NCBI GenBank assembly: GCA_002189035.1 | Contig: NEEC01000007.1 | Span: 2,542,001-2,606,000, forward strand | Direction of reading: 5' to 3' | From: Utricularia gibba | Lineage: Eukaryota > Plantae > Magnoliophyta | DNA length: 64,000 nucleotides | Shown here: positions 10,658-60,431 of the stretch, in pieces | Position numbering within the stretch: the first letter of the stretch is position 1 | Layout of the letters: the number at the start of each line of letters is the position of its first letter | Notes under the pieces: model-generated | The model's input: the letters and a program-made list of their open reading frames with translations, nothing else | Database searches by the model: none | What the model was told of the DNA's origin: nothing | Translations under genes and position numbers: made by a program

Positions 10658-11183
10658 GGATGAATTTGAAAAGTAACAATGTTACTGTTATTGTCTATTG
10701 AAAAATAATTATCACATATATAAAATTTTGATATTTAGGAGTGAGAGAGAATGTTAGAATAGTTAGTTTTGAAAAATAAACTTGTTGGTCTAGTTACAAA
10801 ATAACTCCATGTTAAAGAATTAGAAATCAGAAACCCCTAAAACTGAGAATTGCGAGTTGAGACAAGGGCATGGACTTGGGGGTTTTAAACATTGATCATC
10901 TTACCGAAATAGGTTTTTTAGGTAACATTGCTTTTGAGGGTTTTCTTTTCTTTCTTTCTTTCTTTTTTTTTTCTCATGGTTTGCGAGACAGCTCACGAGG
11001 ATCCAGCTAGAAGCAACAGTTCTGAATTATTGAAAAAAGAAGGAAAACTGAGAGGTCATAAGTTGCATTAATGCACAACTCTATCCTGCGTAGCAGAGAA
11101 ACCAAACATTAAAGAGATGCCTTTCCCGATATTAAATTTCTGGCTGAATCCCTCAGCTAACCACATTGCCGCTAATCACACTG

Positions 11184-11204
11184 CTTCTTCTTCTTCTTCT
11201 TCTT
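11184..11204 (+). repeat. (CTT)7 microsatellite about 90 bp upstream of the WSD copy 1 start
   Basis: Read directly from the sequence. Confidence 0.95.
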
Positions 11205-11291
11205 CTGCTGCTTCCTCTTCCTGCTCCTAGTCTTTACTCCCTCGGTGCAGCTACAAACTCACTAATCAAACAGCGAAAAGGGGCACTCACT

Positions 11292-17891: not shown

Positions 17892-19909
17892 ATGGTTTCT
17901 GTCGAAGGGGAAGACCAGTCTGTGCCTGCGAGTCCATTTTCCCGGCTCATGCACACGGCCAACTTCAATCTCAGCGTCATTACTGTCATGGGTTCCAATA
18001 TGACTTTGGATGTCAACTGGCTCAAGCATTGTGTGTCCCAGAGTCTTGCTAAGCATCCCCGCTTCTCCAGTGTCCTTGTGAGTGCTGTGTGTCTGTGTTT
18101 TCTGTGGTACTTGTGATGTTCTTAACGAGTTTCTGTGTAGGTTTACGAGAACGAAGCCAAGCATACGATGTCCTGGAGGCCGGTGGAAGTGAACGTCGAC
18201 GATCACGTGTTTGTTCCGGATTTGGATCCGGAGATGGAGCACGTGAAAGGAGACAAGATCGTCGATGAGTTCATCACGAAAGTGGCGCAGATCCCAATGG
18301 ATCTCTCGAAGCCTCTCTGGGAGCTCTACGTGCTGAATGTGAAAACCAGTAACTCCGTCTCCACGGCGGTGCTGAAGCTCCACCACTCCATTGGCGACGG
18401 AGTTTCTCTGATTTCGATTCTCTTAGCTTGTGGGAGAAGAGTCTCAGACCCCGAAGCTCTTCCCGTTCTTCCCTCAAGCCAGAAACGTCCGGTTAAATCA
18501 GAGAAAAAAAGGGCATACCTCAGCTTGTTTTTCTCTCTGATTTGGAAGTTCCTTTTGATGCTTTATTACACGTTTGTGGATACTGTAGATTTCCTCTGCA
18601 CATCGTTTACTCGGAAGGACTCGAATCCCATTAAAGGAGACAAGGGAATCGAGCATACTCCCAAGCGATTCGTCCACACAGTTCTCAGCATGGACGACAT
18701 CAGGATCATCAAGAATTCAATGAACACGGTACAATGCCTTGTTCGAACCAACCTCATCATAGGCTTTCGTTGTCTTAACACACACCTAACCAATGCTTGT
18801 TTGCCCGACAACCCCCTTTTCAGACCATTAATGACGTAATGTTTGCCATAACAAACGCAGCCCTCAGTCATTACATTCACAGGACACACTATAATTCTCC
18901 AAATGGTACGCCATCTCATTATTGTTCCACTGTTGTCTGTAGTGACGAACGAAGCAGTTTCATAGAAAAATATAAAAAGCAACTCTTTCCCATCTAAATA
19001 TCTTCTTTGTTGCAGATGACGCTGAGCTACAGAAGGTGGGCATTCGGGGAGTCGTTGCATACAACATGAGGCCATCTGCTGCAATTCAAGTATGTAATTT
19101 TCACGAACTTACACTGGTTTTCTTACATCAGTGGACTTCAATGTGGATGTTTTTTGAACGTCATTTCGGGGCACAGGACATGTACGAAGTGATGCATAAT
19201 GGGAAGCAATTGGACCTGCAAATGTGGGGAAACATGGTCGCATTCATACTGCTCCCTCTGAAGCTGCGTATTCACAAAGACCCCTTGGGGTACATTCACG
19301 AAGCACAAGCTGTCATAAACAAGAAGAAGCTCTCTTACCAGTATCTAATCGAGTATCACATTGTGAAGTTCCTTATCAACGTCCTCGGGATGAAGGTACA
19401 TTGTTGCTCTTTTCTTTTCGCCTCCGTCCTCCGTGCCCCTCTCCATAGCAATGATTCTCAAATCAAGACCTGGTCAAGCGACCCGGTCATCATCTCATTT
19501 CACGTCGATGACAACTTCTGGTTGTTCTCAGAAAGCAGCATTTATGGTGAATTCATTTTTGTCCAACGTCACGTTTACTTTCTCGAGCGTGATGGGACCT
19601 ATCGACGAGATCACCCTCTTCGGATATCCCTCACTTACCTCGCTCCAAGCGTCTACGGATTCCCCGTTGTAAGCCCAATCGCCATTGAAACTGTCATGCA
19701 TTTCATTTGGCGTTTCCTTTGAGTGACTGGTGCTGTTCCTGCAGTCAATATTGGTCCATTTCCAAAGCTACGCCAGCAAGCTGATAGTGTCGATGGCGCT
19801 CGACGAGAAGCTATTCCCAGAACCCCATCAACTGTGTGACGACTTCCGGAGCTCTCTGCAGTCAATCAAAGATGCTGTCTTGAGGAAAGAAGGCATCGAG
19901 ATGAAGTAG
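17892..19909 (+). CDS. WSD1-like: O-acyltransferase WSD1-like, copy 2; 1-nt frameshift in exon 6 as assembled
   Basis: Seven exons: 17892-18077, 18141-18728, 18824-18905, 19016-19089, 19177-19395, 19532-19668, 19745-19909. Intron positions match copy 1 and HHSIGDG is intact. Exon 6 is 137 nt versus 138 nt in copy 1. Confidence 0.92.
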
Positions 19910-31391: not shown

Positions 31392-34300
31392 TCAAAACTG
31401 CGATGATACACCTGGGAAGGATGATCGGAGAGTGTCGAAGAGGGAGGTGGCGGATGCACTCTGAGAGAGAGTCATCTTCAGACGCCCCAGGAGTTCACCT
31501 TCACCATCTTTGGCCTGAGACGCAGCTTCTGCAGCTTCCTTTTCCATCCCAACTCTTGCATACGCCTGCATTCAATTTACACCGCCGCAAAGCTTCAGCA
31601 ATGGAAAAAGGAATGAAAATCTGGTGAGGTTCATCATGTTCGTTCTTGCCTCGGCTCGCTCTCGAGGATCGGAAAGTTTAGGGATGTATTTGAGGGCTTC
31701 ATTCTTCTCACCAGCATCAGTGCAGGCCTCAACGAAAGGACGGTAACCTGCAAAAGATGGATGTTTGCGAGATGCTTATAAGGCATGGGGGAAAGAAGCA
31801 CGATGGACAAACCTATTGGTGGTCGCCTTTCTTTTGAGAAGGCTTCAAGGGCACCCCAGTCCCTAATTGTTGCAAGGGCGAACACTTTAAGCCAGTACCA
31901 TCGTTTTTCTGAAACCTGAATACCCAAAACTTGACGTCAAGCAATGAGGGGCGAGAGCATATGAAAAGAAGACCAAGTAGCAGTTCACTAACCTTGAAGG
32001 TAGTCCTGACTTTATTTGCAGCCTGGTGATTTCCCAGAACAATGCATGTACGTATCGTGTCACTGATACTCGAATCAACGAAAATAGCCTGCTTTGTTGT
32101 AGCTTCAAGTTCATGTTGTATTCTGCAGGTAATCGTGATACTGTGAGAATGCTAACGCGTATAAGCTTATATGCACATGAACAGAGAATAGCAGCAAACC
32201 TTAACAGCTCTGCGTGTTCCTCGGCTGCCTTGGCCTCAAACATGTGCTCCTTTGTGTTCTTGAAAAGTTCATGTGCCTTCTTAAGCACAATAATACGATG
32301 ACCCTTGATCGGATTTTTTGCATGTTTCCATGATTCCGCCCACAGAAGAAAAGCCACTTCCTGCATGAGCATGTGAATGGAGATCGAGAAGGAAAAAAAA
32401 AAAAGGTGCTGCAAAAGAGATGGACATGGGCTTCTAAGTTATATACCTGGAGTTGACCAGCAGATAAGAAGAAGTCCTTCAAGAATTCATGCTTGAAACT
32501 CCTGAATGAGAACCAAAAGGTAAGAACAATAACAAAATGATCGAAGAAACTCCTTTGAGCTTCACCTTGCGTATGCAATGAACAGATCGCGTGCAAGCGG
32601 CCTGGCCTGAATTGTGATGAAGAATTCCAAAGGTGCTCTCTGTATTATTACAGGAAACAGATAAGTGATTTACTTTACTTAAAAGCACTAGAACTGGAGA
32701 AATTTTTTTTTTGACAGTCAGTAATCAAAATTCACCGCACCTTTTGCAATATATGAAACAGCACAAGATAAACGAGATCTGTGTCACCGATTTCAACTGC
32801 TTTTTCCAGTGCATTATCTTCCTCTCCAATGCTTAAAAGGAGAGGAATCTGAAAGAGAGAAGTGACAGTGAATTACAAGAGTTCAATAAGGCCAATATGC
32901 ATGTGGAAGAAATAAATATTCCGAGGAAGAAATGGAAGGCCATAAATTTACCTGCTTTGAACCATGTGGCTCATGTTGAACTAGCATAGCAGCTAGCTTT
33001 CTCCGACCACACTTATCAGCATGAGCAGCAACTGCTGCATATGATATACCTTTGCATATCTTGAGCTGATATTTGAAGACAGAATCATTGCAATTGTAAA
33101 ATCATGTTATCTTGGATACAACCACATAATACGAATTACATCAAAATATAAAATCACTTGATATAAAAACTAGATGGTAAAAAGCATGCCTTCTCAAGCA
33201 GTATTTCAAGAAGAGAAGAATCAGGAATTGCTGAGGATTCTGATATTTTGGTACAAGTCCAGTTCATCAAAACAGATTCCTGCTCATAAAAAAAAATGAG
33301 GCTAATACTAACTGTTTCAGCAGAAAATGCTGCATAGATAAACTTACTTGATTCAGTGAAAGAAATTCTGATATCCGAAAAGCTAGAAGATGTTTACGAG
33401 CATATACCAACCGGTTGATGAGAACAGCAGGTGTGAGCACCTGCATGAGGACACAAGATTCAAACTAAGAAATTTTTTTGACGAGTGTCATTATTGGTAA
33501 CTGCAAAACTCAAGAATTATGATTCACCTTGTACTGCTGAATGCTTAGAGGAATACCAATATTGATGCTGCGAACATCATTCAAGACACGCAATATTTTA
33601 CACATCTCTCGTATGCTGTCACGCTGTACATGGCTGTCAAATCCAACTGAAGATCATTAACCAAACAATAATCAGAATATGAAACCTTTAACAGCAAACA
33701 CTAACAATTATACTAAAAAAGTACGAGAGAATCTCCTAACTATTGGCATATAAATAACAGTACAAATTTGAGAAGCATCAGACCTTGCAAAAGTCTGGCC
33801 ATAGCTTGCAGCTCTCAGCAGTGTTTGCTGCAGGCGTTTATCAAATTCATAACCAGCGGCATCAATACATGCCTCAACAGCTTCTGGAAGTGAAGAGTGG
33901 ATCAACCTTAAATTTTCATCAGCCTGAAAGCTGTATGACATGAGCCTCCACTCAAGAATCATCATATAGTGAACATACAGAACATTTATTTTTTGGGAGA
34001 ATTAATCAACAAAAAGGCGCAAGAACTCAAGTGGAAGATCTGGGTTCTTTTCCATCTAACTCAGCTAACCCACACCCCAGCTTTCAGAAAGGTGATACAT
34101 TATTCCAAACGCTACATTTCTACAAGAGCTGTGAAAAAAGCACATGAATCAAGGTTCACACCTTTCAAAAAATTTTGCAAATTACCTTAGCGCTTTTCCT
34201 GTCAAAATGGTCAAGGGCATCGTACAGAAGAGCAGCAGGTGAGGTACTTCCTATTTGAAAGATAGATACTGTAGAGTCAGGAACTCTATGCAGGAACTCC

Positions 34301-35574
34301 ATTCTCTTGTCTGAGAGTATACGCACTCCATCATTTTCTGGGATAAGAATAATCGGTTCATCATATATGTATCGAACTGGATCTCCGAAGGGACCCACCA
34401 TTAATAACATGTCATCCCAGTACAGCAAGATACTGTCCAATCCACACCAAGCCAGTTGTTCAGGAGGAAGGCTTGACTACGCAAAAAATAAGGAACACCA
34501 AAGAGGAAAAAAAACAGCATGAGTACAATATACAACCCAAACAAGCACTAACAGAAAGGACTAGATGACAGTCATGTAGAACGGTTCATCAGGAACCAAA
34601 TCTCTATGATGTTAAGCCAAACGAGAAACAGAATAATGGACATTGGACTTCTTTTATTAAAGCTTAATCCACTAAATTCCCCTCAAACTTCACTAAAGAT
34701 TCAAAGACAATTCATCAGAGGAATTCCATGGTTAATTATTCGATCCAAGAATGATGATCGGTGTTTGCATAATTCTTGACAAACTCATTAGTAAATGTAC
34801 CTCACAGGTATACTCAATTATCACATTGGAAAAATCCACTGATAATACAAGAAGCCTCCCATCATGAGTGAAACATGCAACATACTCCCCTCTTCTAGAA
34901 ACGACCATCTTCTGGAAGGGCCCAACTCCTGGCGCCAGTTGCTGCACCTCATCCTCTTCGACCAACAAAACATGATCATCAACACCCATAAGCAGCTCCA
35001 CATCCCCAGATTTCGTGCACTGAGGATCAATCACCGCCATACAATGTGGAAGCGCTGCCAAATTACAATCCGGCAACTTAACTGTCTTCGGCATCTTCAA
35101 ATCCGGTATTGAGAAAATCTCAAAAGCCTCGTTTATACAAACCACGCCGTTCCCTGAGAAAACGCATTCAGCAACGCTGTTCTCAACGCACTCTTTGCCC
35201 AATGAAAAAGTTTTCACCAACTCGGCGTGGATATTGTAAAAATATACAGAGCCGTCCTGCGTGATGCAGACGAGAATTAGGTCATCAGTCCATGACATTC
35301 CGATAAGGCGACCCCCAGGGTTCTTCCAGATCGTCTCGGAGATGAGAACCCCGGAGGCGGTGAATATCCGGAGCTTGCGAAGCGCCGATTCGGCGTAAAG
35401 CTGGACGATTTTCGCATCGTCCCGAATCACCGCAATGGGTCCGCCGAATGGGGCGCAGGCGATCTTGTTCCGCGCGAGGTCCACGTTCTTCCACTGCATC
35501 TGGTAGATCTCCGGCTTCCGGTAGTAGCGGTTGTAGAGGAGCTGCCACTCCGCCGCTACTGAAATCCCCCCCAT
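31392..35574 (-). CDS. VPS16: Vacuolar protein sorting 16 (VACUOLELESS1), HOPS/CORVET subunit
   Basis: N-terminus MGGISVAAEWQLLYNRYYRKPEIYQMQW. Internal segments ILLYWDD, ADENLRLI, PLARDLFIAYAR, KEHMFEAKAAEEHA, VSEKRWYWLKVFALA. C-terminus AYARVGMEKEAAEAA...FDTLRSSFPGVSSQF*. Multi-exon; exon 1 is 35574-34801. Confidence 0.96.
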
Positions 35575-35765
35575 CCCCCAATTGAAAAAGCTCCTACCTT
35601 TACTTCAAAGCCCTCATCTTTTATTCAGTAGTTCTCTGATGATGGTGTAGGCGAGGAACGAGAGAACAAAGGTAACCTCCTCAAATAATTTTCATTTTAA
35701 TTCTTGAAAATTTGATTTTTAATAATTTAGTAATTACACATAAGCCGGACTATTTTTAAATAATA

Positions 35766-36254
35766 TGTTCTGATAGTACCCTGACGCAGTAAAGACGTAC
35801 AATGAAGATTGTTAAGTTGAAGCGTCTGGGTCGATAGGATTCGATGAGGATCGGAGATCTCCGAGCGCACACGGCGAACTGAAGATTGTAGAGAGGAAGC
35901 AGACCTACAAAGGGATGAGAGGGAAGCTTCCGCGGCTTTAATGGTGGATAACTGTTGCAGGAGATCTTGGTGGCGATAGATCACTTGATGGCGAATTTGG
36001 GTATCAAGGAGCCGGAGTCACCCTTGAAGTTTTTCGATTCTCGAGGCGGCGGAGCCGGAGGAGAGTGCGGTGGAGGAGAATTGTGTGGGGTTGAAGTCAG
36101 GGGAGAGAAACGGGGAGAAAATTGGGTCAGATGAAAAGCTACCCAAGTTGGAGGTCGCAGAGGAGAGTTTTGACGGAACGGAATTGGGGGCGCCGGCTGC
36201 GACGAGAGCGGATGACCTCTGCATTGGAGATCTGGAAATGGCTGGGGAAGCCAT
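35766..36254 (-). pseudogene. COG5: Truncated COG5 (conserved oligomeric Golgi complex subunit 5) 5' fragment with an in-frame stop
   Basis: A single frame gives MASPAISRSP...SDPIFSPFLSPDFNPTQFSSTALSSGSAASRIEKLQG*LRLLDTQIRHQVIYRHQDLLQQLS...SLQSSVRRVRSEISDPH...LQLNNLH...TIRT, matching the plant COG5 N-terminus as I recall it. TGA at 36018-36020. Homology stops after ~163 codons of an ~830-aa protein. Confidence 0.9.
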
Positions 36255-36542
36255 GATCTGCAGTTATTTCCGCTCCTTCAATCGGATGAAAGCACCACAA
36301 GTCCTCCTCCCTCCCTGCAAATACCTTCCATCGGAGCAAGACGCTGGTCTGGAAACATCACTTGCCAATCCATATTAAATGACAAAACGCCTGTACTGTT
36401 GAACAACGATACAAAGTTGGGTAGTATCAAGAATTGATGATCCCTGGAGACAAGTAGTGTATGCATGCATACACAGCTCTGTTCTTCTACTTGAGCCAAA
36501 AAATTAGATATCATACTAATTCTTATCAGGTTCAAAGGAAGA

Positions 36543-39500
36543 TTAGTTGGAGGATGACTTTTCCTTCTTCCCAGCCAGAATCATGGAAATCTGGAGGCCT
36601 CTACTGAAAGCTTGGTTGAAGAGCAACCTCGTTTGGAACTCGGACACGAAGGGGAACCATGATAAAACGACGATAGGCATGAAAATAACGAGACCCATTA
36701 TCGCCTCATATGCTCTAGCTAGCTCCATTACTGAGCTCCATATTCCCACTCCCTGCAAACAAGGTCTGATTGCTTGGAATATCTGCAAAGAGGAGTGATC
36801 ACAGTTGATTGATTGGTTTCATAAGAAGATGAAATCTACTTGTGAATGTGGTCTAGGATTTACCAGAATCATGGCCCATCCTGTGGGCATGAAGGCCAAG
36901 ATGGAGGCGAAGATGTCGCTAACGGCGAGACCACAGACAACAAAGAGTACAGTCATAACGGATATGAACCCGAGGAACAGTAGAGCTTTCAGAATCCTGA
37001 ACATGAGCTGGAAATCCGTGCCAAACTTTCGTCTTCCCATTGAGACCATCTATAAATGCAAGGGTGTTGGTGCTAAGAAGACAATGTGAATCATTTGGTG
37101 CAGAGTGATGTACACTGAACTATGAAAAAGGGGGTACCTTCAAGACTAGAAGGGCAGTTAACATGACAAACCAAGATAGCCCATAGACCTGTAAAAGATA
37201 TATGGCACTAGTTATCAACCATTAACATGAATCAAAGACAATGAATTCAAAAGTAGACGGTTCCATAGGTCTTTACCAGAATATTCTTGCTATTCTGTGA
37301 TATCCTGAGGTGATAAACAATCCCATATTGGTAAATGAAAAACCGCAAACAAAGGATGATCTCAAGCAATCTGCCCCTGATATTGGTATACTTCAGGTGT
37401 TCCTGTTCTTCATTCCACCAAGATTCCCAGCTTTTGTCTGGTGAAATCCCAATGCCGCCACGGTTTCCCATCCACCTTTTCCAGTCTGCCCAATCATCAA
37501 CTGTTTTTTGCCACTCAAATCCGGATGGATTGAAGATAAAGGGTGCAAACAACCAGGAAGCCACAAGGTACCACATTGAGAATGTTATGAAGAAGTACAG
37601 AGTGGAGCCACGATAGGAGTGTCCATATACGTCGTATACAATTAAAAGTATAAGCAGTTCCAGCCCTTTTACGAAGTGGCTGCGAGAGTACATCCTGTAG
37701 TTATCTGCAAACTTGGCATGGAAGACAACAAAACCACGGCCTGTGGCACGATATTTTGAACCTCCATGTAGAATTGTTCTTCCATAGTAATGAGCTTTTG
37801 TTCCCAGCTGAAACGTAAAGAAGACAGAAGCCAGCTGCAGCTGCATCACAATAAAGTCACCAATAGCCTTTCCGAATCCCCTTTCAAGCCCTGTTTCCAT
37901 AACCATAGGTAACACAAGCAAAAAACCCAGCTGAAAAAATGACTGTGTAGCTAAGGCCTGCTCCAGGGCATTACTCTGACGAACAGATGGATCCTCTAAA
38001 ATCCGCCTCTCTAGTCCACTCAAGACCATATATAGTCGACCATATAGGAAGACATACACAGTGAGAACTGTGACCTGAAATAATTTCTACATTAATACCT
38101 CAAACATGGGTGGACTAAGGATGGGCCAGTGAACTCGAGAGAACTTTCTACTTTCTATTTCAAATATTCCACCAGAGAACTCAATAAATTTGCACAGAAT
38201 ACCATGGTCATAATATGCGAATGAATATGCAAGCCTGTAATCTGGATATACACTAACTTCCCTACATATCATAAAAGATAGAACATGTGTGCAAAATATG
38301 TAATAATGAAGGAACTAGGACAAGGACGCAAACGCACATACCATGCTGCTGAAGTAAAAGCCAACTGTGGTGAAGTAAAAAGACAACATCCTGTAGAAGT
38401 CAAATCTTCGTCCAAGACGAAATACATCTCGGCAAAGAGTTTGCTCTCCATTCCCATTAGCAACCTTTGCCTCAAACAAAGAAATCTGATTCATGCCAAC
38501 ATCTCGGCCCTTGCCTACTTGAATGTATTCATGATGTGTTACATAGCCCCTTCGAAGTGTTGAATTGTAACCTGAGAATGTAGTAACTCAATTAGATGAT
38601 AAAAAAGGTAAACGTATCCTGAGAAAAATGTTTCAAGTTGATTTTACCAGCAAATATGTCTTCACTCAGGTTGATTGTTTTTGATGCTTTACTTATTCCA
38701 CCTCTTGTAAGGTGAAAAATTCTGTCAAATATATCAGGGTGACCGTAATGGAACCTCACCCTGATACGAAGTTTGAAATATTAATGTGATTATCAAAAAA
38801 ATTGCTTGTCCTCAAAGAAAGGTGATGCTCCAGTGAGGCTATTTAATACTGGAAATTTACCTTAGTGGACTAGCCAATATTCTCTGGCCAATTGTCACAA
38901 AACTCGTCTCTTGGTTCGACATAAACCAAGCAAGAGAAGAAACACTATGGCCCAAGGAAAAGGTTAAGTAACAAGTTTTACGTTAGTTCCTTGAGAAAGA
39001 AGGTATTTGGCTAAGCCTTCTATAGAAGACTGCATACCTTCCAGTGAAAATATGCTCCCTCAATCCTAATATAGTGGGTCTTCGCCCTCCACGACGAGGC
39101 CTCTGAAATTCCTCCAAAACATTGCGCATCTTGAAGGCTTCCTCAAAATAATTATCCTGCAGAAAAAATTAAGATGTTAGTATCACATTACTATTGGACC
39201 CACAACAGGGAAGAAAAATGCAAAGCATCTGTTATCAGACTACTGCCAAATAGTCACCAACCTGATTCATATCTATGGTTTGCAAGGCTTCTCCTCGTGT
39301 AAAAATGATTGCATGATTTTGATTTTCAGGCTTCCCTTCACCAACTTGTGTAGGAGGACCAGGAAGTTTGATACGATATATTTCCTGGAATTTAAAGCAG
39401 ACATTGCACACTGACCTTACTATTGACAGGAGCCAGGATAATAACAAGTTTATTTTAGCTTAACAGCAAACCTCATCCAACTTGTCACCTCCCTTCACCA

Positions 39501-42500
39501 GCACAGAATAATGAACCTTCACAATTTTATCCTTCACAGTCCCATCTTTCACGGTCTCATCTTTCACAATCTCTTCCCTCTCATCTATATAAGCAACCCG
39601 CAGCGATGAATACCTTAAAGATTCATCAAGTATTGTGAAGATTCAGCCCGTTTGTTGAGGTGAAAAAAAAAGAGAGATCAATCTTGAGATGCATCTTACG
39701 TGCGCATTAGATTCAAAATATTGTTATAGATACTTCGCTCTTGGGAATCACTGGATTTCTTCTGTGCGCCATAGACCTGACAAGAAACCACATACGTGAA
39801 TTTGAGATCTGCTAATGCTCGTGCTCTTTCTTGGAGAATTCTGTAATCCCTGTGGTTAGCATCAATTGCTCTATATCCCTCGAAAATTGCTGCAGAGGCA
39901 GGAAAATACTTTCATGGAATTAGTGAATGAAACTGGAAAATGAAAGCTGGTGAAAAAACGCATATGTGAAACAACCATTATCATCAGCAAAATCCAGAAA
40001 GCATTGAAGCTCCAAGGCCTCTTTATAGTACATCATCCCTCTGACTGGTGCAGGAAAAAGAATGCATATTGTAAATAAGATGCATATACCATCAAAAAGA
40101 TCACATAGTCATGTATTTCACCTGTTCGTGCAAGGGTCTGACCCCTATAAGATACCCATTGACGGTCCAGTTCAGATCTGTCCTTGTCAGCATAGCCAAG
40201 TTTGGGATCGCGGATCCGCTCCTCATAATTTTTCCATTCATCTGTAAGGAAAAAATGGTATTTTAGGACTTCAATATCCTGAGGATATGATTCATCTTAC
40301 ACCCAAAAAAAAAAAAGAAGTCTCACCAGGATATATTTTCTGAAGATAAAATAGGATTGTAATTCCATCTTCATTTTCCCTGTTAAGTTCCTCTGTTGAA
40401 TACAGAACTGGTTCTTTGTAGTATGGCGTCAAAACACTGAAACACAGAAGGATGTTTCTTACTTTGCTATAAAGCTTGGCATTATTACATGTATCTTTCA
40501 GAAAACACATTTAAAATCTGGTGAAAAAAGTGAATAGAAAATTTGACATATTGAACGGAAATAAGAATCAGATAAGAAATTACCTAAAAGAGAGCATATT
40601 ACGAACTTTCGGGGCACTAGGCATGATCATAAATAAAGAGTTGGCAAAAAAAGTAATCCGGCGCCTTGCATCTATATTCACAGGGACATTGATTGCAGAT
40701 TCTTTCACAGTTAAGAGCAGATGAAGCCTGACAACCTGAGAAATAAGATTCAACACACAATGAAGCTATAGAAACAGAAGAAGAAAACATGAACAAGGAA
40801 ATTTGAGAGTTATTTCATACCTTTTCCATCCAAGAGCTACTCTGGAGGAGATCAATCCTCACTTGTTCAAACCTTTGCTGTTTTCTTGCATCATTAGTGA
40901 TTTTCAATACCCTAAAAGCGGAAAAATCAATGATTTATTGATATTTGAACATATAAGGACTACAGAAATAAGCTAAGAAATATTAGTGGTACATACACTG
41001 GACCACTAATCATTACATCTTGAATTATTATCTCCATGATATCCTGAAGCCTCTTAATTATCTGAAGCCGATACGCCTGCTGGTCTTCATAGTCAGCCAT
41101 CTGCCAAGCGAAATAAAGAGCAATAGCATCATAGAAAGTACAGAGAAATATACTGTAATCAGAAGTTTGATTTACAGACAAAACATACAAGAAGGCTTAA
41201 AAACTTGTCCAATTCATCACTTAGAGGAGGTAACCCCGTCATATTGAACCCCTTCAAGAATCTTCGCTGTTCTATGCTGCCTTCCACTTCTTGGCATATT
41301 TGCCAAACCAGTCTGACATGTGAAAAATGTTTGATGAGGGAAGTCGCACAACAGAATTACAGGTTTTCCGTAGTCCAAAGGAAAGAAACTAGCCTTCCAG
41401 TTTGAATGCTAAAGGTTAATCTAACCAGAGGTTGTTCTTACTTTCTGTCTTCATCATCTAAAAGCAGGTCACGGAGCAAATCCCTAAGGGTCTGATAGCA
41501 CTCAATTACCGCAAAATACATAAAATCATCATATTTAATTTTTCTGAAGAGTTCGTCATCTTCCGCCTCAGTGAAATCTTTTGCCATGTCCAATGCAATT
41601 GGAATCTAAATGCAGTAAAGAGATAATGAGACATAAAACGAAGCACATATGCAGGTAAAGCTGGAAAATAGGTATATTTAAACCTTGCTGGCAAGCAAGA
41701 AAGGTGGCCATTGGACAACAGATACATCACTTGATGAATATGGAACGAGTAGTAGATCTTTCTCCCTGTATAATTATTTCAATGGAAAACGCTCAACTTG
41801 GTAAATCAATAGTATGCTTCTCATATCTAATTCATAGATCTAGATCAGATTAAGGAAATAGGCCCCTAGGTATTGGCTGATAAAACTAACCTATGGCTTA
41901 TCAAATCCTCATTTCTCAAAGATAATATGAACTCATTCCACATTTGGGAGAACTTGGCAATCTTGATTCTATCCAAGGGATCATCCTGAAAAATAGTTAA
42001 GGTGAGATAGTAAAGTTAACAGTGTCTCTAAATGAGGACATGGCTGAAAAATATTTCAGGCATCAAAATTGGGCAGAAAAATAAGGATAACACAGTACCT
42101 CCTCATGTCTAATTTCACCTTTTGAGTATGGAACAAGACGCCTACTGAAAGCTCTTGGAACAGACTCAAACCGTGCCCTTAAGATACCAAGTGATCTTAT
42201 CTACAATTACAGCACCGGCACAAGACTGAATCAGAAAATACTACTAAATCTAATCTATATAAACCAAGGGCAGGGAAATCACTAACTTCGCCAAGGTGGC
42301 TGAATGCGCCATAGATTCCACCAACTACAGTTGAGAAGATAGCATACCATATTTGTGTATCCATGTAATAGACCTGGATGCACACTCTACTTTAATGGGT
42401 GAAAATCAATATGTTACAAGTGACATTTCACATTGATTTCAATGTATTTTACCAGAACAATTGGAGCCCATACTGCAATAAGGACACCAATATTATGAGA

Positions 42501-45500
42501 AGCTGCATGAATTCAAGTGAAAACGATTAGCCTTAGACTAAAAAGGGAAGTTCTGTGAACAATAATATTTTACCATTTGGAAAGAATTCATGCCAATCAT
42601 AGCCACTGACTCTGAGGTTCATGATGGTCTGAGTTGGTTGAATCAGTGGCAATATCTGGTTAAATTTCAATAAGAGGAAAAGGTAAATTAATAACTAATG
42701 GACTAAGCAAACAATATTCTCCATAAGAAAATGTATGAAAATTAAAAAAAAAAATTCTTACTTCAACATAGTAGCTGAAAGCCAGTTTGCAAATTAAAAG
42801 GGTTATCCAGAAAAGTGTGTATCTGTGTAAGCAGAAGGGTTAATAAGTATGGGTTTAAAAAATGGTTATACTGCAGTAAGGATGGGTTTTGTCCTACTTC
42901 AGAAGTGAAAATACGTCTTCGTGCATTCCTCTTCCAACATACTGTTTTGGCTACAATCCAGGAAATATTAACCAAGAATTACTAAGACATTCAGAACCAA
43001 GTAAAAATGATAATTACCTACCTGTGCCCACCACATTATTAGTATAATAATTCTCCAGTTTGAGCGCTCTAAAGATCTCTTCAGATAAGGAAACAGAAAC
43101 AACACAGACCCAAGTACATTGGGCACCAAATAAATAGCAATGCAATAGTAATATAGGGGCTGTCTCTGCCAGTCAGCCCCTAAACTATTGAGGAATCTCA
43201 GTATCCCACTGGGGTTTGGAACAGCTCGAGAATAAGTTATAGGCAAGACTACTACCCAGAATGCAGCAAATGCAAATTTGAGAATATACCGGAGCATTTG
43301 ACTAAGTTTCAGGTTTCTCCAAGCATTATATAGGAGAAATATGTCGAGTACCGCTGTGCATTCAAGGATAAAAACTTAGAATCTCTTTGTCACTCAAATT
43401 CCACACAGGTAAAAATCTGACTAATTAGTCAGGAAACTGGCGGATGATTGATAACAAATGACAAGGTCAAAAGCATTAAAGAGCAGAACAAAGAAAAATG
43501 CAAACATTGGTAGGAAAGAAGGTTCAAATAAACAGTAAGATACCTCGCCATAAGTTCATTATTGCAGCCGTAATGAAAATGCTCAGAACATCACGAACCA
43601 CATTAGTGTCAAAAGGAGGTCTTGAGTATATGCTTTGATTCCATGCAATAATTACCATCGCCTGATATGAAGTCCATAACAAGATACATGTCAATCAGAA
43701 AATAAACAAATATAATGAATTCCATAAGAAAAATCAAATGCTTAATGGTCCTTTTGAACCAGTTCCATGCATAAGAAAACAAAAATGGGAACAAAAGATC
43801 ATGAAGCTTCACCAAAAAACGTCTTGTATCCATAAGAAATATAGCATTATAATGCACCTGTAGAGTCATTGTAAAAAAAATCCACAATCTGTCAAAGCTC
43901 CTGTAAAGGTGCCAAAATGTGCGGACTTCAACAAAATTTGTCTTGGGTTTTCTTTTACCCACAGGCTGTTTCATTCCCTGTAATGATGTCCATATTGAGA
44001 CAAATACCAAAAGGAAAAGATATACAAGTACCATAGGTATCCGATGAGAATGTTCTACAGAACCAACAGTTTATTCATCAACAATCAGCAAAAACTTAAT
44101 TTAGTTAAGCAATTCAGTTTTAGAGAAAAAAAAATCTAGGAGTTTCGAAAATTGTCTAATTTGACTGCAACAGGGAAGTCTCATGAGTCATTTCACTCCT
44201 TACTCTGACTTGGCTGCTCTCACGAAAGCATATTGTCAAGTAGGCAGAAAAATGGTGCTACTCTCGACTGGAAATTGGTTAAAAGATATGCACTATTCAA
44301 GAAAGAAAAATATGCATTACAGAGGACACTGTACTACAAAGCGTTAATAAAACAAGACTGAGGTTTCCAATAGATAAAATGTCACTTGCCCGTCTTTTTG
44401 GCATTGTCACAGTCGAGTGAACAAAAAAATCAGAATCTTTATTCCATGGCCACTCCAACTTCAAACATTTCTTATTCCTGAAAATGAAGAAGAAAAGGCT
44501 AGAAATCATACATAATAGATGGAAAAAAATACGAACTCTGAAAGATACCTTGTTCAGTAAAAAAAAAAGACAGTTTCTATAGATGCACTAACCAAAAGTA
44601 CTCATTTAGATCATCATAATTTCTCCATTCTGAATGGCTTGCTTTGCCACCATTGTTTCTTCTAACTTCCTTGGAAATATAAGAAAGTGACTCAGATAAA
44701 TAATATAAAAATGAAAAAAACTCTGAAGTTAAGCAAGGAAATCAGAAACGTACTTTTCTCATAACATCATAAACTGGCACCACAACATCCCTCAGGAATG
44801 ACTCTTCACTTGCAGCACTTATATGTGTACGTCCAGAAGCATGTTGAGCATTACGGTACAGAGTCTCATACATCTCATATGCCATCTAAAATGCAATAGT
44901 GATGTTAATGGATCCAGAAAAATTTCAACAACTTTCTGGAACAAGCAAGTGACTGTGCAATGAATGAACGGAATTTCTGGAACTTCTTGTAACACTTTCC
45001 AAGAAAGAACAAGCTTACCATTTGATATGCTTGCAGGAAAAAAAACAAGCATTCAAAAGAAACTTTGTTTATGCAACAACTAGACTTGTGTATGAGTTTC
45101 CATAACCAAATGACTTGTTCCCAATGTGCAAAGGAAATCTAGCTTTCTCAGAGTAATATAATACTTTGATTCAAGGAAACATACACGGTGAAATATATAG
45201 CATATGCATTCAGGCATGAATCGGATATTTGAGGCTTCACCCCAGATAAGAAGATAAAGTCCAGTGTAGAGAAGCTGTGACTGCTGCCTCCTTTCACCCC
45301 ATGGACATCTTCAAGAAACATGGAGCCCACATTTAATATAAATGCACATAAAAAAGCATGTAACTGCCAATCAGAATTTTCAGTATAAGCATAATAAGTG
45401 TACATACTCCAAATTTTGTGAAATGTGCAAGTATTTGCACCATAACTTGTAATTCTTAAATATCTTTTCCATCAACTCCTGAACTGTGCTGCTATCCAAC

Positions 45501-47434
45501 TGCATACGAATGATTCAAGTGACAGGAACTTTTTGGGAAACGAGAAAGCATTACACTGTGTCATTTTAGTAAGAAACCACAGAACACTCACAAGCTCATA
45601 ATTCTCCTGAAGATTCTTGCTCCTGACGTCCATATTGGCAATAAGCAATATTAAATGCTCTCGTTGATTTGCTGCATTTCCTTTCTTCATCATCAGCATC
45701 AGAATAGAAGTGTTACAACTTATCTGAGCGTTTTTGTGATGACAACTAAAATAGAGAAACTGAAATAATAGCATCATGTGCTAACTATGCCATAACAGGT
45801 GGCTGCTAGTTTTTGCCGCTTAGCAGTTAAGCAAACTAATAAAAAATATGATAATATGACTAAACCAAAAACGTTCTTGCTAGTTTTACGAGAAATCACT
45901 AGAGTACTCAACCTTACCTGGAAACCAAAGCGCAAAGCAAGCCACTCAACAATATCATTCACTGGTCTCGGCTGTCCTTCACGCATTTTAATCATGGGAA
46001 GACTATCTACATCACAAATTGCTCGAAGGGCTGCCTTTATCTGATCATCATAGAAATAGATATAAAAAAAAGAGAGAACAGTTAGGATAAAATCTGAAGT
46101 AGATCTGCACATGACTTGCAACTCAGTGTATTTTTTATACACCAACCTCAGGGAGTTCCATAATAGCTGGTTTAACTCCAACAGCATATAAGGGCAGAAT
46201 ATTGTAATGCTCATACTGCCCCCTTTTCTCTTCAACATCACTGGCATATCTCTGAGTCTGCATTATTATGAGTATAGAATGCAGTCACTACTCAGTCCGT
46301 AGGAATAGATAGACTACATATGAATGCTCTATAAAAATAAAATAAATGAAACCTCAGGATCAATTTTTTTTTCAGGAACAACTGTCCTCAGAACATCATA
46401 GAGCACAGTAGCAAATTGACATATCTTGACCATTTCCTCTCTGTCCGAACAAATACACAGGTGTTAGATTTATATCATAATATATAAGAGAGGTGATTGC
46501 ATTCTTGAAAAGGAAACGAAACCAAGATGAAGAAGCATTACGGTTTTTTCTTATGCTGACCATGCAAAATATTTTTCACATAAAACATCTGATAATATTT
46601 TTGAATTTCCTGGGGATCAGTTTTTGTAAGAATAGGCTTTGTATGTTCTTCTTCCTGCACCAATTGAAATTCAATCATGAGCAAGCTACATTGTAAACCC
46701 TTCAGTATTTTAAGGAGAAAAAGTAAACGGCCACTACCCGCGGAACACAACATATGCTGATAAATATAGTGTCACAACAAAACCCACATCGTCATACCTA
46801 CCCTTTCAAGTCTATGCAGCAGATATGTCTTGAACTGACGGACACCTCGGCCACTGGATGTTGGGTCCATCCGATGAGCCTTCTCAAATGCATGGAAACG
46901 ACCTAGTTAATTGGGGGAAAACGTGAGAAGCAAAAACACAGCAACTGATAGAATAAGAAAAGATACTTAAGGGATCATTTCTAAAGGTATTCAGTTGCGA
47001 AAAGATCATGCATCAGAGATGACAAGTAAAAATCACAAAAGCTAATCTAGACTGACTGCTCCGACCACAGAAGTCATATGATTTCGTAATGTCTAGTATA
47101 ACCCATCAGCAACTAGAAGTTAAGCCACCAGCTTAGCAAGCAAATGTGAGACACCTCCCATAATACCAAGGAAAACACTATCTATAAACATTGCAAATAA
47201 AGCGGCTCAGAAAAATATGATATTCTCACATAAATAAGCAACTCGAGGATTCTCAATCTCGACTTCGTTTGCCACTCTCAGAATGGGAGCAATTAATGCC
47301 AAAGAATCAGGCACTTGCTCGCTATCCACCGCAGGAGTATCATCTGCAGGGTCCACCATTGTGGCTACTCTTGACAGTCTAGAGAACGATCTTGGAGGCC
47401 CCCCATCATCCATAGTCCCACTTGAACTCGCCAT
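36543..47434 (-). CDS. CALS7: Callose synthase, CalS7/GSL7 type (phloem clade)
   Basis: Starts MASSSG...[11 protein letters not shown]...RVAYLC. Motifs [111 protein letters not shown]. About 40 exons, not all checked. Confidence 0.95.
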
Positions 47435-49776
47435 GTCAACAACGATATCCCTATTCAACAACAAAGCAGCGTTGCTACTCCTCGTCCACTCTTACTGCCC
47501 GATGTTCTCCAACACAGCTTCATCAGGAAAAAAACAAAAGCCCGCATGCATATAATACACAACAAGAGTAAATCGTACAACAAGATTCGTTGGTGAAAAT
47601 GGGAAGCAACCCAAGTTTTTTCCTTTATATTTTTTTACTTTTGAGATTTCTCCGAGGCGAAGAAAAGAATGTTAAGTGGACTTGGATAATCCGTGTCCTA
47701 CCTCAATGATCTGCTGCTTTTCCCATAGTTTTGCTTTACAGCAAGGAAGTGGAGTCCCCATTGAACGGATTTGAGACGCTTTTCGTCTCTGGGGTATTAC
47801 TTTGTGATTCTTTAGTGCCAAACTCTGAACCCACTTCGCTTTGCTTTCCGCCATGGGCGAAGATACCTTTGACGACGACCTCAAGTTCCCCACCTTCACA
47901 AATGTTGGAAATGTATTGAAAGAATTCATGTCTGGGAAATAAAATATTTCTCCCTATCGCTACTCCCCTCCACGGCTAATGTACCCGCTGCGGGCGTTTC
48001 TCCCAATCGCTACCACAATTTCATCCAAATCCATTCCCAGCGCAGCGCCACCAGGCGCGGCAGATGGCAGAGTGTAGACAACTTCTGCAACTACCTTAAC
48101 AGATGAATCCTTAGATCATTCACTTTATAAACCCACCTATGCATGTAAACACTTTCGCCTTCAGCGAATCTAGCCGTTGGTGGTAGGTCCGGATTTCAGT
48201 AAGCTTCCAGTGGCAGGAGAGATCAACTCAACGACCCATTCTCTGCAGAAAAATCAACAACCCTTGCTCTGGATTGTTTAGGACGAATTACCTTTTACAA
48301 AATCTGCAGAATCGTTTTGCGTAACAACTCTGCCATACTGGAATTTCCCATCGGTAAAATGATTCCTTTTGTGCTTACCTGTATTAGCCGTTAAAACGAC
48401 CACATAAATCAGATGTCTTTAAGCAATTTCAAACGGCATTATTCACATTCAACGCCACCCATGTAGTGGGTAGCGAGGAGAAAGATAAAATTCAGGGAAT
48501 GATGTTTGAGGGTATGCTTGAGGTTCCACCATTGAAGAGCTATGATGCCTAATTGCTTCTCTTTCAAAGACCTAACTTTTGTATAAATTCTATGTGGGAT
48601 GATGGGAACATTTCAGTTTTCATTTATCATGCAGTGCAGGAAACGATTTCGTTTATATACCGTCTTGCTTCATCTGTCAAACACTTTCATTGCCAAACCA
48701 GCTCATTTTCAAAACTTCGGTCTTTGCATGAATGCTTCAACCTCTCCGGTTCAGAGGCACTCCTGATTTATTTGCCCAGTCATCTGTGCCAGCCGAGCCC
48801 TCTCTCTCAAGCTGCCCTTTGATTGCTGCTTTATTCACGTCTCAAGGACGAAGACCTAGGGAACTGAATCGAAAGCAAGTAGTAAAGGTCAGTTTTTTTC
48901 TTTCTCCTGGATCAGTATCTGTTCGCATCTGTACTTCTTTTTTGCTTGGCTGCGAACCCATACGTTTTCTTCATTTACAGTGTCCCAACAAACAGAGAGA
49001 ATTTAGAGGCGAAGTGGAGGATATTGATCGATCATGCTCAACACAACAGCCTTGCTCGGCTTCTTGGCTATCGGATCGACGGAGTTCACAGGTGATAATA
49101 ATGTATCCTTCGCAAAACAATCAGCTTCAGGAATCCAGTCCTAGTGCGAAGAAGGCACCTTCTGTCAATTCTCACGTCAATAATTGGTGTAGAGCCCGTC
49201 GTCTTTCTGATGGGAAGTGATTCAGCAGATGGGTCTTCAGCTAGAAGTAGAACGCCGGCCTGACTTGTTCTTCCGGGTTCTCGGGGACTACGCGCGCGCT
49301 ATGTTAAATACATATTAATTATATATTAATTAATATGATAGTAAAATATAATATATTTTTATTTAAAATAGTTTTTTATTGACTATAGTACGTGAGTATT
49401 ATATTAACATTATATACGTAACTATATATTTAACTATACTAATTTGCATAAAATAAATAATAAATATTTTTTTATTAAATAACATACTTTACAAAACATA
49501 ATTCATATTTTTTTCAAATCAATTATTTTTGTATACATTACTTGAAATTATATTTGATATCAAATAAATTAAAATGTCCTAGTAAACAAATTTTAAGGGT
49601 TTTCTGGAATGTTATCGTTTCTAATTAACCCCCCAAAAGCTGACTTGTGAGTAGGTAAGCTTTTTCACTTCTTCCTTTTACTATTTTCACTGCGCTTTTA
49701 TTTACTTTTACCCTGGGCGGTGCTCTCTTTATTTAGTTTACCCGGCGCATACTTCTTCCCCACCAACTGAAACAGC

Positions 49777-50605
49777 ATGGCGTCTTTTGCTTTCACTTTC
49801 TTCCTCCTCTCGGCGCCCTTCCTCCTCACGGGGGTTACTCACGGCGGCCCTCTCACTATCACCCTCGTCAACAACTGTCCCTTCACAATCTGGCCGGCCA
49901 TCCAGTCCAATGCCGGCCATATCACCCTCGAGCGCGGCGGCTTCCCTCTCTCCAGCCTCACCCATCGCTCATTCCCGGCCCCGGATGCCCACTGGTCCGG
50001 CCGCATCTGGGCCCGCACCGGGTGTACTCACGACGGTCGCACATTCTCCTGCATCACCGGCGACTGCAACCGCCGCCTCGAGTGCGATGGCGTCGGCGCC
50101 TCCCCGCCGGCAACCTTAGCCCAGTTCTCTCTCCACCACGGTCACGCCGATTTCTCCTCCTACAGCGTCAGCCTTGTCGACGGCTTCAACCTTCCCATGA
50201 CCGTCACTCCTCACGAAGGCAGGGGCCAGTGCCCGGTTGTCGGCTGCCGCGCAGATTTGCTCAAAACCTGCCCACCCCATCTACAGGTCCCTTACATACA
50301 CCCCACAGTTCTCTGAAATTTGTTTCAAAACACCTCTCACGCTTTTCGACTTCTTTACATGTCTTGGGTGGCAGTTGAGGACCCGCGGAGAGGTTGTCGG
50401 GTGCAAGAGCGGGTGCGCCGCGTTCGGTTCCGATGAGCTTTGCTGCAGGAACGAGTTCAACAGTCCGGCGAGATGCAGGGCGTCGAGTTACTCGGAGTTT
50501 TTCAAGCACGCTTGCCCGGCCACCTTCACTTATGCGCATGATACGCCGTCCCTGACGCACGAATGCTCTTCCCCGAGAGAGCTCAAGGTCATTTTCTGCC
50601 ACTGA
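49777..50605 (+). CDS. Osmotin/thaumatin-like protein (PR-5 family) with signal peptide
   Basis: Exons 49777-50286 and 50375-50605. Motifs LTITLVNNCPFTIWPAIQ, WSGRIWARTGC, YSVSLVDGFNLPMTVTP, CKSGC, HECSSPRELKVIFCH*. Resembles the At2g28790-type clade from memory. Confidence 0.93.
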
Positions 50606-58355: not shown

Positions 58356-60431
58356 TCAACTCGATTCATAAGGTAAAGAAAACAAAGGATTGGCAGGAGT
58401 TTTTGGATCAGTTCCTGCAGGGGGGGAATGGTGGTACCTGTTAGTATTGGAACGAAAAGGAAGAGGTGGGGAGGGGGCAGATATACCTTCCATTGTGCTG
58501 CTTAGCCAGTCCTTAGAGCAGACCAACGCTTGCAGGGTTTCAGGCACAAGAGAGTTCCAGGAACGATCAAGAGGTCTATCACCAGTGTCAAATAGCGATT
58601 CTGGGGAGGCTTTTGAGATTGGGATCCCGAGGATGTTGCGAGCCATCATAGAAAGAACAGGGTATCTTGGTTCGTGAACCTTCCACCAGTTCAGTATGTT
58701 AAGATCACCACTGCGCGGAAAAACTGGCTCCTCCAAATATTTGTCCAAGTCCGATTTTGTGTTTTGATTAACTGAAGTTTCATGTAGGAACTTATCGAAC
58801 CCAGTGAGTCTGTCCTTAGCAGTACCATCACCATTTTCAGAACTCAAGCTTGATCCATGAGCAGCAGCTAATGGTGAGTAAATGATATGACCATCATAGA
58901 GTGCTTTCATACAATTTGAAACGATATCGATGCAAGCTGGTGCACTATCCCCATAAATCTGTGGATAGTAATACTCCACCAGTTTCATCTTGAAACGAGG
59001 GTCTAAGATTGCAGCGATCGCCATTATCAAGCTGCATTTCTTCCAATATTCATCAAAACTGGACTTCAGCTTTAATGCCAGAGAGCTAATGAAGTCATCA
59101 GACTTCTGGCACCATTCAATCAACTTGAGATGAATATCACAAATCTCCGCAAAAAACGAGTTTGCAGTAATATGCTTGCTTCCCACAAACACATTGGAAA
59201 CTTCACTAAAGAATTTGAGTACGCTCATAATCGACCTTAATCTGTCCCAATCCAAACCAGAAGACCATGTCGAGAACTCAGGGTCATGCTCTTGCAGTTG
59301 ACGAAAAACTTCTTTGTATTCTAAAACCACTTCAAGCATCATGTATGTTGAGTTCCACTTGGATGGGTTATCATCCAGCAAACCCCGTAGCAAATCAATG
59401 CCAAGTAACTCAACTATCTCATTCAACTTTTCATGTGTTGGCTGCGATCCCTTAACATATCGAATTGCCTCTCGAACCTTATTGATCATCTCACATGAGG
59501 TTTCCAGAACTTGTAGAACCAACAACTTGACAGTACTTGCTGCACACCGCACATCAAACAGCTGGCCTTCGCACATGAGAAACCTATGCTGCAAAAGCTG
59601 CTCTCTCATTCTGGAAATGGCAGCGTCATAAACAGATGAGTTATCCATCGTCAATGAAAACAACTTACGATCAATATCCCAACTCCTCAGACTTGTCATG
59701 ATTGATTCTGAAAGCGGTAGGTCTACTGCTTGGGAAGGATCGATCACCAAAAAGTTCAATGTCTTCTTCTTCAATTCCCAACAATCATCAATATAGTGTG
59801 CTATTAGGCATAAATATTCCATGCCCTCATTTGTAATCCATTTGTCAACACTAAGACTGACCTTTCCAGATAATTTATCCAACTCCTCGTACACTCTCTG
59901 CTTCTCACTTCTATAAATCTCCAGACAAGTAGCTTCTAAATCACTAACCGTCATTAGATCAAAGAAAGGTTGAAGATTTCGAACAAACGTCCTGAATCCG
60001 ATGTCATCAACTATGTATAGAGGATAACCATGCAATATAATCATGCGCGCCAGATCTATCTGACTCCTCCTACAATCAAAGCTCAAACTTTTTGCATACC
60101 CAACATTAATACCTCCTTCTGCAGCAACAGTGACCATTCCACTCTTCATTGATGGTTGGCTATGACTAAAGCTGGAGAGAGCTTGCGAAGTCTGCTTCTT
60201 CTTGCCCCTGGTTAACAGCTGACTCACATCATGGTTTGATCTCCTACGACAGCGAATCAAGTGGTTTCTCAAATGGGAAGTCCCGCTCGTACTTGAACCA
60301 CTGAGTACTCGCTTGCAGTGCCTACATATTGCGGAAAACGTTTCTCCCTTTTTAACTCTATCGAAATCATTCCATACTACAGATTTCAGCCTACTAGAAT
60401 TGACAACCACTGCTTCCTCTGGAACCTCCAT
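58356..60431 (-). CDS. BED zinc finger / hAT-dimerisation protein of the domesticated SLEEPER (DAYSLEEPER/RICESLEEPER-like) family
   Basis: 691-aa intact ORF. BED finger (VWNDF...CRHC...GTSHLRNHL..C), IILHGYPL, AILDPRFKMKLVEY, LNWWK...YPVLSMMARNILGIP. Probable 5' UTR intron ~60985-60450. Possible donor GAAG|GTATAT near 58486, so the last ~43 codons may be intron read-through. Confidence 0.92.
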   Translation of the reverse strand: MEVPEEAVVVNSSRLKSVVWNDFDRVKKGETFSAICRHCKRVLSGSSTSGTSHLRNHLIRCRRRSNHDVSQLLTRGKKKQTSQALSSFSHSQPSMKSGMVTVAAEGGINVGYAKSLSFDCRRSQIDLARMIILHGYPLYIVDDIGFRTFVRNLQPFFDLMTVSDLEATCLEIYRSEKQRVYEELDKLSGKVSLSVDKWITNEGMEYLCLIAHYIDDCWELKKKTLNFLVIDPSQAVDLPLSESIMTSLRSWDIDRKLFSLTMDNSSVYDAAISRMREQLLQHRFLMCEGQLFDVRCAASTVKLLVLQVLETSCEMINKVREAIRYVKGSQPTHEKLNEIVELLGIDLLRGLLDDNPSKWNSTYMMLEVVLEYKEVFRQLQEHDPEFSTWSSGLDWDRLRSIMSVLKFFSEVSNVFVGSKHITANSFFAEICDIHLKLIEWCQKSDDFISSLALKLKSSFDEYWKKCSLIMAIAAILDPRFKMKLVEYYYPQIYGDSAPACIDIVSNCMKALYDGHIIYSPLAAAHGSSLSSENGDGTAKDRLTGFDKFLHETSVNQNTKSDLDKYLEEPVFPRSGDLNILNWWKVHEPRYPVLSMMARNILGIPISKASPESLFDTGDRPLDRSWNSLVPETLQALVCSKDWLSSTMEGISAPSPPLPFRSNTNRYHHSPPAGTDPKTPANPLFSLPYESS

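Follow-up and report, generated by a model that had tools for sequence, protein, structure and literature searches.

Gene loss after duplication (fractionation) in maize is said, in work by Woodhouse et al. from 2010, to proceed by short deletions. In the Lentibulariaceae, genome contraction by deletion and short intergenic DNA are described for the Genlisea aurea genome (PMC3728226), and fast substitution rates in a second source (PMC5749785).

Here we analysed a 64-kb stretch of DNA (the window) in which the front part of a COG5 gene lies between a callose synthase gene and VPS16. This piece is probably a young relic, left in place by a deletion, that now forms mostly the 3' UTR of the callose synthase gene, with VPS16 having a compact promoter of its own ~110 bp downstream. 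The locus resembles the uORF-bearing or chimeric leaders that arise from gene fusion in that a same-strand ORF stands upstream of the start codon of an essential gene. Unlike in such leaders, no contig links the ORF to VPS16, and the ORF follows the stop codon of a different gene, on the mRNA of the latter.

Layout of the interval and identity of the COG5 relic

On the minus strand, the stop codon of the callose synthase gene (36545-36543) and the ATG of VPS16 (35574) are separated by 968 bp, in agreement with the ~970 bp given by an earlier note on this DNA. Read in the direction of transcription, the interval and the two exons that border it comprise the following features.

36543..36782, minus strand: last coding exon of the callose synthase gene, with the TAA stop at 36545-36543, from reading the end of the ORF
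36255..36542, minus strand: stretch from the callose synthase stop to the ATG of the relic, 288 bp, transcribed; spanned continuously by X1 record 2 and X5 record 4
35767..36254, minus strand: COG5 relic, the first ~162 codons of exon 1, from Pfam, tblastn, DNA alignment and tree
36018..36020, minus strand: in-frame TGA, codon 79 of the relic, within the EKLQEGLRLL motif of intact COG5
35654..35766, minus strand: AT-rich spacer, turning pyrimidine-rich next to 35653; uncovered by RNA contigs; occurs once in the window
35575..35653, minus strand: 5' leader of VPS16, at least 79 nt, ending at the 5' end of the X1 record 1 contig
34801..35574, minus strand: coding exon 1 of VPS16 (VACUOLELESS1-type), Vps16_N match of 119 bits

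Both flanking genes were searched exon by exon, each exon singly. The ORF of the callose synthase gene closes with a C-terminus typical of the family and then the TAA; its intron joint 36782/36864 is present in spliced RNA contigs from three runs, and an exon further upstream gives a Pfam Glucan_synthase match of 178 bits. For VPS16, the intron joint 34476/34801 is likewise present in RNA contigs, and exon 1 shares 88% identity with VACUOLELESS1 of Sesamum radiatum over the N-terminal 141 residues and 84% over all 258 codons. The 288 bp that follow the callose synthase stop are either proximal 3' UTR or else former COG5 upstream DNA; this stretch, located upstream of the coding part, showed no similarity to the COG5 loci of other species. 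The spacer at 35654..35766 has a GC content of ~0.32. The transcribed leader of VPS16 holds a mini-uORF of five codons (M-R-A-L-K-stop), running from an ATG at 35617 to a TAA at 35600.

Some features elsewhere in the window were recorded on the way. An uninterrupted ORF of 691 residues at 58356-60431 on the minus strand contains a BED zinc finger together with hAT-like RNase-H and hAT dimerisation domains; it represents an intact hAT transposase or else a SLEEPER-like gene that has been domesticated. The plus strand carries two wax ester synthase/DGAT-type copies (WS_DGAT_cat and WS_DGAT_C) at 11166-12219 and 18168-19722, ~7 kb apart, as well as a thaumatin-family gene at 49777-50316.

Between the callose synthase gene and VPS16, the earlier note had recognized a dead 5' fragment of COG5 of ~490 bp on the same strand, with an in-frame TGA in the EKLQ motif and an end ~190 bp short of the VPS16 ATG. 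This description is borne out: Pfam, phmmer and tblastn agree on the fragment, and its coordinates are correct. A frame of 78 codons runs from the ATG at 36254 to the TGA at 36020-36018, after which the same frame continues to ...LLRQGTIR; the window reads EKLQG*LRLL at the stop, compared with EKLQEGLRLL in intact relatives. The two pieces of the relic were searched separately, with the stop coded as X in custom scripts. Against the Pfam profile COG5_N (PF10392), for which the cut-off is 31.2 bits, the second piece scored 47.9 bits over profile positions 44-119 of 132 and the first piece 18.7 bits over positions 1-33. In a phmmer search of 1.84 billion representative proteins the second piece returned COG5 matches with a best E of 1.7e-19, and tblastn with four full-length plant COG5 proteins (800-932 residues) gave a match from 36254 to about 35733-35769. 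The ~490 bp of the relic, ~162 of ~830 codons, take in the N-terminal variable region along with most of COG5_N. No further COG5 sequence was found in the 64-kb window, with tblastn returning nothing past residue ~175-210 and the COG5_C (PF20649) part missing.

When the DNA was aligned to intact COG5 exon 1, homology was clear to ~35766, where it fades, and beyond this point the window continues with unrelated AT-rich DNA. As observed in Bauhinia (L005) and at a Sesamum-type locus (L002), intact COG5 genes comprise three exons, of which the first, ~1.1 kb long, codes for residues 1 to ~370. Because exon 1 is this long in the intact gene, the relic amounts to its first half, and the break falls in mid-exon and not at a splice site. 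The stop codon, the loss of the COG5_C part and the mid-exon break all mark the fragment as dead. A GT that follows ...LLRQ (35780/35778) was considered as the donor of exon 1 and rejected, as intact COG5 has no intron there and the homology runs a few codons beyond. Nesting of VPS16 in a COG5 intron was also rejected, the rest of COG5 being absent from the window.

Compared with intact plant COG5 (Genlisea aurea M569_02540, P0263; Bauhinia variegata L6164_029322, P0148), the relic aligns without gaps through the variable N-terminus and COG5_N, and zero indels separate it from intact COG5 over 120 conserved codons. Unlike the intact proteins, it carries the TGA, lacks COG5_C and has substitutions at several positions that are invariant in intact COG5. 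A literature search on COG5 pseudogenes in plants found nothing relevant.

A maximum-likelihood tree of N-terminal COG5 sequences placed the relic as sister to Genlisea aurea COG5 with a support of 98/97. The terminal branch of the relic is 0.29 compared with 0.12 for Genlisea aurea COG5, i.e. 2.4 times longer, and the two sequences are 75.6% identical over 168 residues and 78% identical over the columns used for the tree. The alignment also shows that the COG5 N-termini of Lamiales are fast-evolving in general. Pairwise dN/dS between the relic and intact COG5 is 0.12-0.21, and dS is saturated at 1.2-2.8. Because dN/dS is this low, most of the divergence of the relic probably predates the death of the gene, and because dS is saturated, no dS-based date can be given. 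With its lack of indels and its low dN/dS, the relic looks young as far as sequence comparison goes, and as a rough estimate the excess branch length of ~0.17 amino-acid changes per site might correspond to at most ~0.07 neutral substitutions per site after the loss of constraint. Two expressed variants bear on its decay. One, found in run X7, is 97.5% identical to the window and keeps the TGA; it carries six nonsynonymous and four synonymous changes in the ORF-like part, including a change of P to L in the conserved DPIFS motif. In the other, found in run X6, 6 nt are deleted. The TGA predates the 2.5% divergence that separates two expressed variants. Protein searches returned no near-identical intact COG5.

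Transcription across the interval and the start of VPS16

Of the 11 runs listed, nine hold the stretch or part of it, and these come from three studies of one organism. Four of them (X1, X5, X6 and X7) were aligned over 32500-38000. That they represent RNA is evident from their contigs, in which introns with GT..AG ends on the minus strand are spliced out. The contigs carry no poly(A) tail, and rare isoforms drop out at the contig level.

In X1, a spliced callose synthase contig of 3446 nt (record 2) runs unbroken from 36782 to 35767 with zero differences from the window. A contig of the second study (X5 record 4) is likewise continuous from 36782 through the stop codon and the relic to 35832. 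The relic is thus physically continuous with spliced callose synthase exons in the contigs of both runs. In the third study, X6 and X7 together cover 35814-36522, with X6 record 7 reaching 36522. None of the RNA contigs that cover the TGA differs from the window at this site. VPS16 is represented by a separate contig of 2751 nt (X1 record 1), from which eight introns have been removed and whose 5' end lies at 35653. At 35654-35766 no contig was found in any of the four runs, and the relic and VPS16 are never joined; the depth of X1 in the bin for 35654-35766 equals that contributed by the contigs on either side. At the level of contigs, the relic thus belongs to a 3' tail of ~776 nt on the callose synthase mRNA, although a separate relic transcript that overlapped the 3' end of callose synthase would yield the same assembly. 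The earlier note had assigned the relic to the promoter space of VPS16. By contig continuity it is mainly callose synthase 3' UTR, and promoter space of VPS16 only in second place.

The contigs end near the 3' side of the relic at 35767 (X1), 35832 (X5) and 35814 (third study). The X1 end coincides exactly with the breakpoint of COG5 homology, and a CA dinucleotide is present at 35767/35766. Possibly, the AT-rich DNA that a deletion brought in sets a cleavage site here. A fork in the assembly (de Bruijn) graph, caused by the mRNA of a near-identical intact COG5 paralog, is another possibility for the same end. At the left contig ends of one study (35814 in X7, 36150 in X6) we observed a non-genomic, oligo-like sequence of 23 nt ending in GGG. 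If this is a template-switch oligo, it would mark the 5' ends of plus-strand antisense RNA inside the relic. An Rfam scan of 34000-38000 gave no match.

Coverage in the third study is uneven. In X6 the relic is covered at a depth of 3-8 and the callose synthase coding exons are uncovered; in X7 the relic contig has a depth of 16.3 compared with 0.6-8.3 for the exon contigs, and a gap lies at 36415-36500. The better coverage of the relic in these two runs fits either 3' bias or an independent RNA. Under the latter, the relic would keep the old COG5 promoter, within 36255-36542, and make a short non-coding RNA of its own, overlapping or abutting a callose synthase mRNA with a shorter 3' UTR, and assemblers would have merged the two. 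We regard this as unlikely. It would account for the depth profiles of X6 and X7, the former without coding exons; however, X6 record 7 reaches 36522, 21 nt past the stop, so that transcription would have to start in or at the end of the coding sequence, X1 and X5 from the two other studies run unbroken from spliced exons through the relic, and libraries with 3' bias also lose coverage toward the 5' end. A different proposal, made in the earlier note, is that the captured COG5 promoter would drive VPS16, at least in part, as a chimeric COG5-VPS16 mRNA with a 78-codon uORF that might also yield a short peptide from the COG5 N-terminus. In its favour, the relic is transcribed and has the same orientation as VPS16, only ~110 bp are without contig coverage, and rare isoforms are lost from contigs. 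The proposal nevertheless runs against the data: the VPS16 contig begins at 35653, the upstream contig ends at 35767, the two are unjoined in every run with no contig bridging 35654-35766, and the relic contig is physically continuous with the exons of callose synthase instead. As to the peptide, the expressed variants mostly change amino acids, also in the conserved DPIFS motif, and include the 6-nt deletion; because of this, no relic peptide appears to be under selection. We consider a VPS16 mRNA of this kind highly improbable.

Plant core promoters are often AT-rich with a pyrimidine-rich run such as the one seen in this spacer. The spacer at 35654..35766 would hold both the end of the callose synthase transcript, with its terminator region, and the core promoter of VPS16. 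The idea of a tiny promoter for VPS16 survives in this weakened form, as ~110 bp between contigs; that of a regulatory arrangement not described before does not. The callose synthase gene and VPS16 are a compact tandem gene pair, for which no new mechanism is required.

Gene order in other species and the origin of the relic

A callose synthase gene of Bauhinia variegata (CM039437.1) is collinear in its 5' half, exon by exon, with 42436-47446 of the window. An intact COG5 of 843 residues lies 4.4 kb from the start of this gene, and 13.7 kb downstream of COG5 there is a VPS16 stub on the COG5 strand; the four genes between COG5 and the stub have no counterpart in the window. The order and orientation of COG5 and VPS16 are the same in Bauhinia as in the window, whereas the Bauhinia callose synthase gene is inverted and stands head-to-head with COG5. 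The three genes are neighbours in both the legume and the Lamiales window, with a different member intact in each. By contrast, the callose synthase/COG5/VPS16 neighbours were absent within 10 kb in Sesamum (L002, L003), Ilex (L009), Cornus (L006), Camellia (L007), Nelumbo (L008) and a Logan contig (L010). The earlier note had suggested checking the callose synthase-COG5-VPS16 order in relatives; these neighbours were recovered in Bauhinia, with callose synthase inverted. This one outgroup species suggests that the relic marks the old position of COG5 and not an insertion.

Several observations were made on these and other genomes. The Bauhinia VPS16 stub (L004:10001-11427) consists of exon 1 in three frames and exon 2 only, is annotated as two small genes, and is followed by an aspartic protease gene. 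In Acacia pycnantha (P0152, P0233), a single 4.6-Mb contig carries both COG5 (locus tag 014337) and a short VPS16 N-terminal model (014391). Two distinct COG5 proteins (P0266, P0277) occur in Sesamum indicum, and therefore duplicate COG5 copies exist in Lamiales. In wild Sesamum assemblies, frame shifts in COG5 exon 1 and VPS16 exon 1 (L002:10354-10694, L003:10420-10423) have led to split models; they are probably indel errors of assembly and not pseudogenes. An isolated COG5 5' fragment of ~250 codons, annotated as a gene of 276 residues, occurs in an Oleaceae-type genome (L001:10088-10849; GCA_912172775.2, OU503049.1). It is sister to Fraxinus COG5, with a branch of 0.22 compared with 0.018, and has no callose synthase or VPS16 gene within 10 kb; an organelle-type Proton_antipo_M gene lies nearby. 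Because this fragment is independent, COG5 5' stubs recur in Lamiales genomes.

Whether the relic stands where COG5 once stood can be weighed on the same data. The earlier note had left it at a deletion or an insertion that fused the front of COG5 to the VPS16 leader. Of the two, deletion is the likelier, given the Bauhinia gene order and the lack of transposon ends, and insertion loses ground. For the latter, a fragment would have been copied from an intact COG5 elsewhere and inserted, by transposon capture (of the Pack-MULE or Helitron type, for example) or as filler in double-strand-break repair. That COG5 5' fragments arise independently, as in the Oleaceae-type genome, speaks for such an event, and the low dN/dS to intact COG5 suits a recent copy equally well. 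Against it, the callose synthase/COG5/VPS16 neighbourhood in Bauhinia would be an unlikely coincidence, and the surroundings of the relic lack terminal inverted repeats, target-site duplications and repeated flanks, the direct repeats being short and at chance level. We hold an inserted copy to be very unlikely; because Bauhinia shares the COG5-VPS16 order and orientation as well as the callose synthase neighbour, a relic in place is much likelier. An assembly misjoin at about 35654-35766, which would put the relic falsely beside VPS16, might be read from the absence of RNA contigs across these positions and from the X1 contig stopping exactly at the breakpoint. However, the window is free of Ns, three independent studies back the connection of callose synthase to the relic, Bauhinia likewise has COG5 upstream of VPS16 in the same orientation, and an untranscribed gap between the end of one gene and the start of the next is expected anyway, which leaves a misjoin extremely improbable. 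There is also a small chance, about as small as that of an inserted copy, that this is an ancient, selectively kept neighbourhood of membrane-trafficking genes, common to a legume and a Lamiales plant that each retain one member intact and a 5' stub of the other, in which the stub and the old promoter still matter for the expression of VPS16 or callose synthase. If so, the stub could, as a long 3' UTR, make the callose synthase mRNA sensitive to nonsense-mediated decay, or it could serve as an upstream regulatory region of VPS16.

Under the likely account, a young relic left in place by deletion, COG5 would once have stood between the callose synthase gene and VPS16, and the relic would be an unprocessed pseudogene. 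A deletion, the presumed cause, would have extended from a point midway in COG5 exon 1 to one ~190 bp ahead of the VPS16 ATG. What was left, ~490 bp, would then have gained a stop codon and would now be drifting, encoding no working protein. The relic would be transcribed passively, making up most of the ~776-nt untranslated tail of callose synthase. The callose synthase transcript may end, with a putative poly(A) site, near the breakpoint at ~35767, where the AT-rich DNA starts, and VPS16 would start at or slightly upstream of 35653 from a compact core promoter placed tentatively in the ~110-bp spacer. An intact COG5 copy presumably exists elsewhere in this genome.

Significance and comparison with known systems

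For annotation, the appropriate label for the relic is a COG5 pseudogene fragment within the 3' UTR of the callose synthase gene, neither a separate gene nor part of VPS16. As a deletion relic it would offer a clean, datable case of a gene lost through deletion, in a Lamiales genome that evolves fast and has bladderwort-family affinity. Considered alongside the mirror-image VPS16 stub of Bauhinia, it suggests an old neighbourhood of callose synthase, COG5 and VPS16, a possible synteny marker. The ~776-nt 3' UTR on the mRNA of a putative phloem callose synthase, combined with the ~110-bp gap, is mildly relevant to termination and interference in compact plant genomes.

The relic shares with fractionation relics a truncated same-strand piece where an outgroup has the intact gene, a stop codon, the loss of most of the gene and, possibly, relaxed constraint. 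Unlike in maize fractionation, where deletions are of tens of base pairs, the deletion here would be large, removing the remainder of COG5 and possibly genes that lay before VPS16 (13.7 kb in Bauhinia). The contraction of Lentibulariaceae genomes is matched in the spacer, apparently shortened by deletion to ~110 bp between a transcript end and the next start, and in the position of the relic as sister to Genlisea aurea COG5. Unlike a minimal Lentibulariaceae genome, the window also holds retroelement and hAT sequence. Deletion and fast rates in the Lentibulariaceae fit a deletion relic on a long branch. In summary, the relic looks like an ordinary kind of object, a truncated pseudogene left by gene loss.
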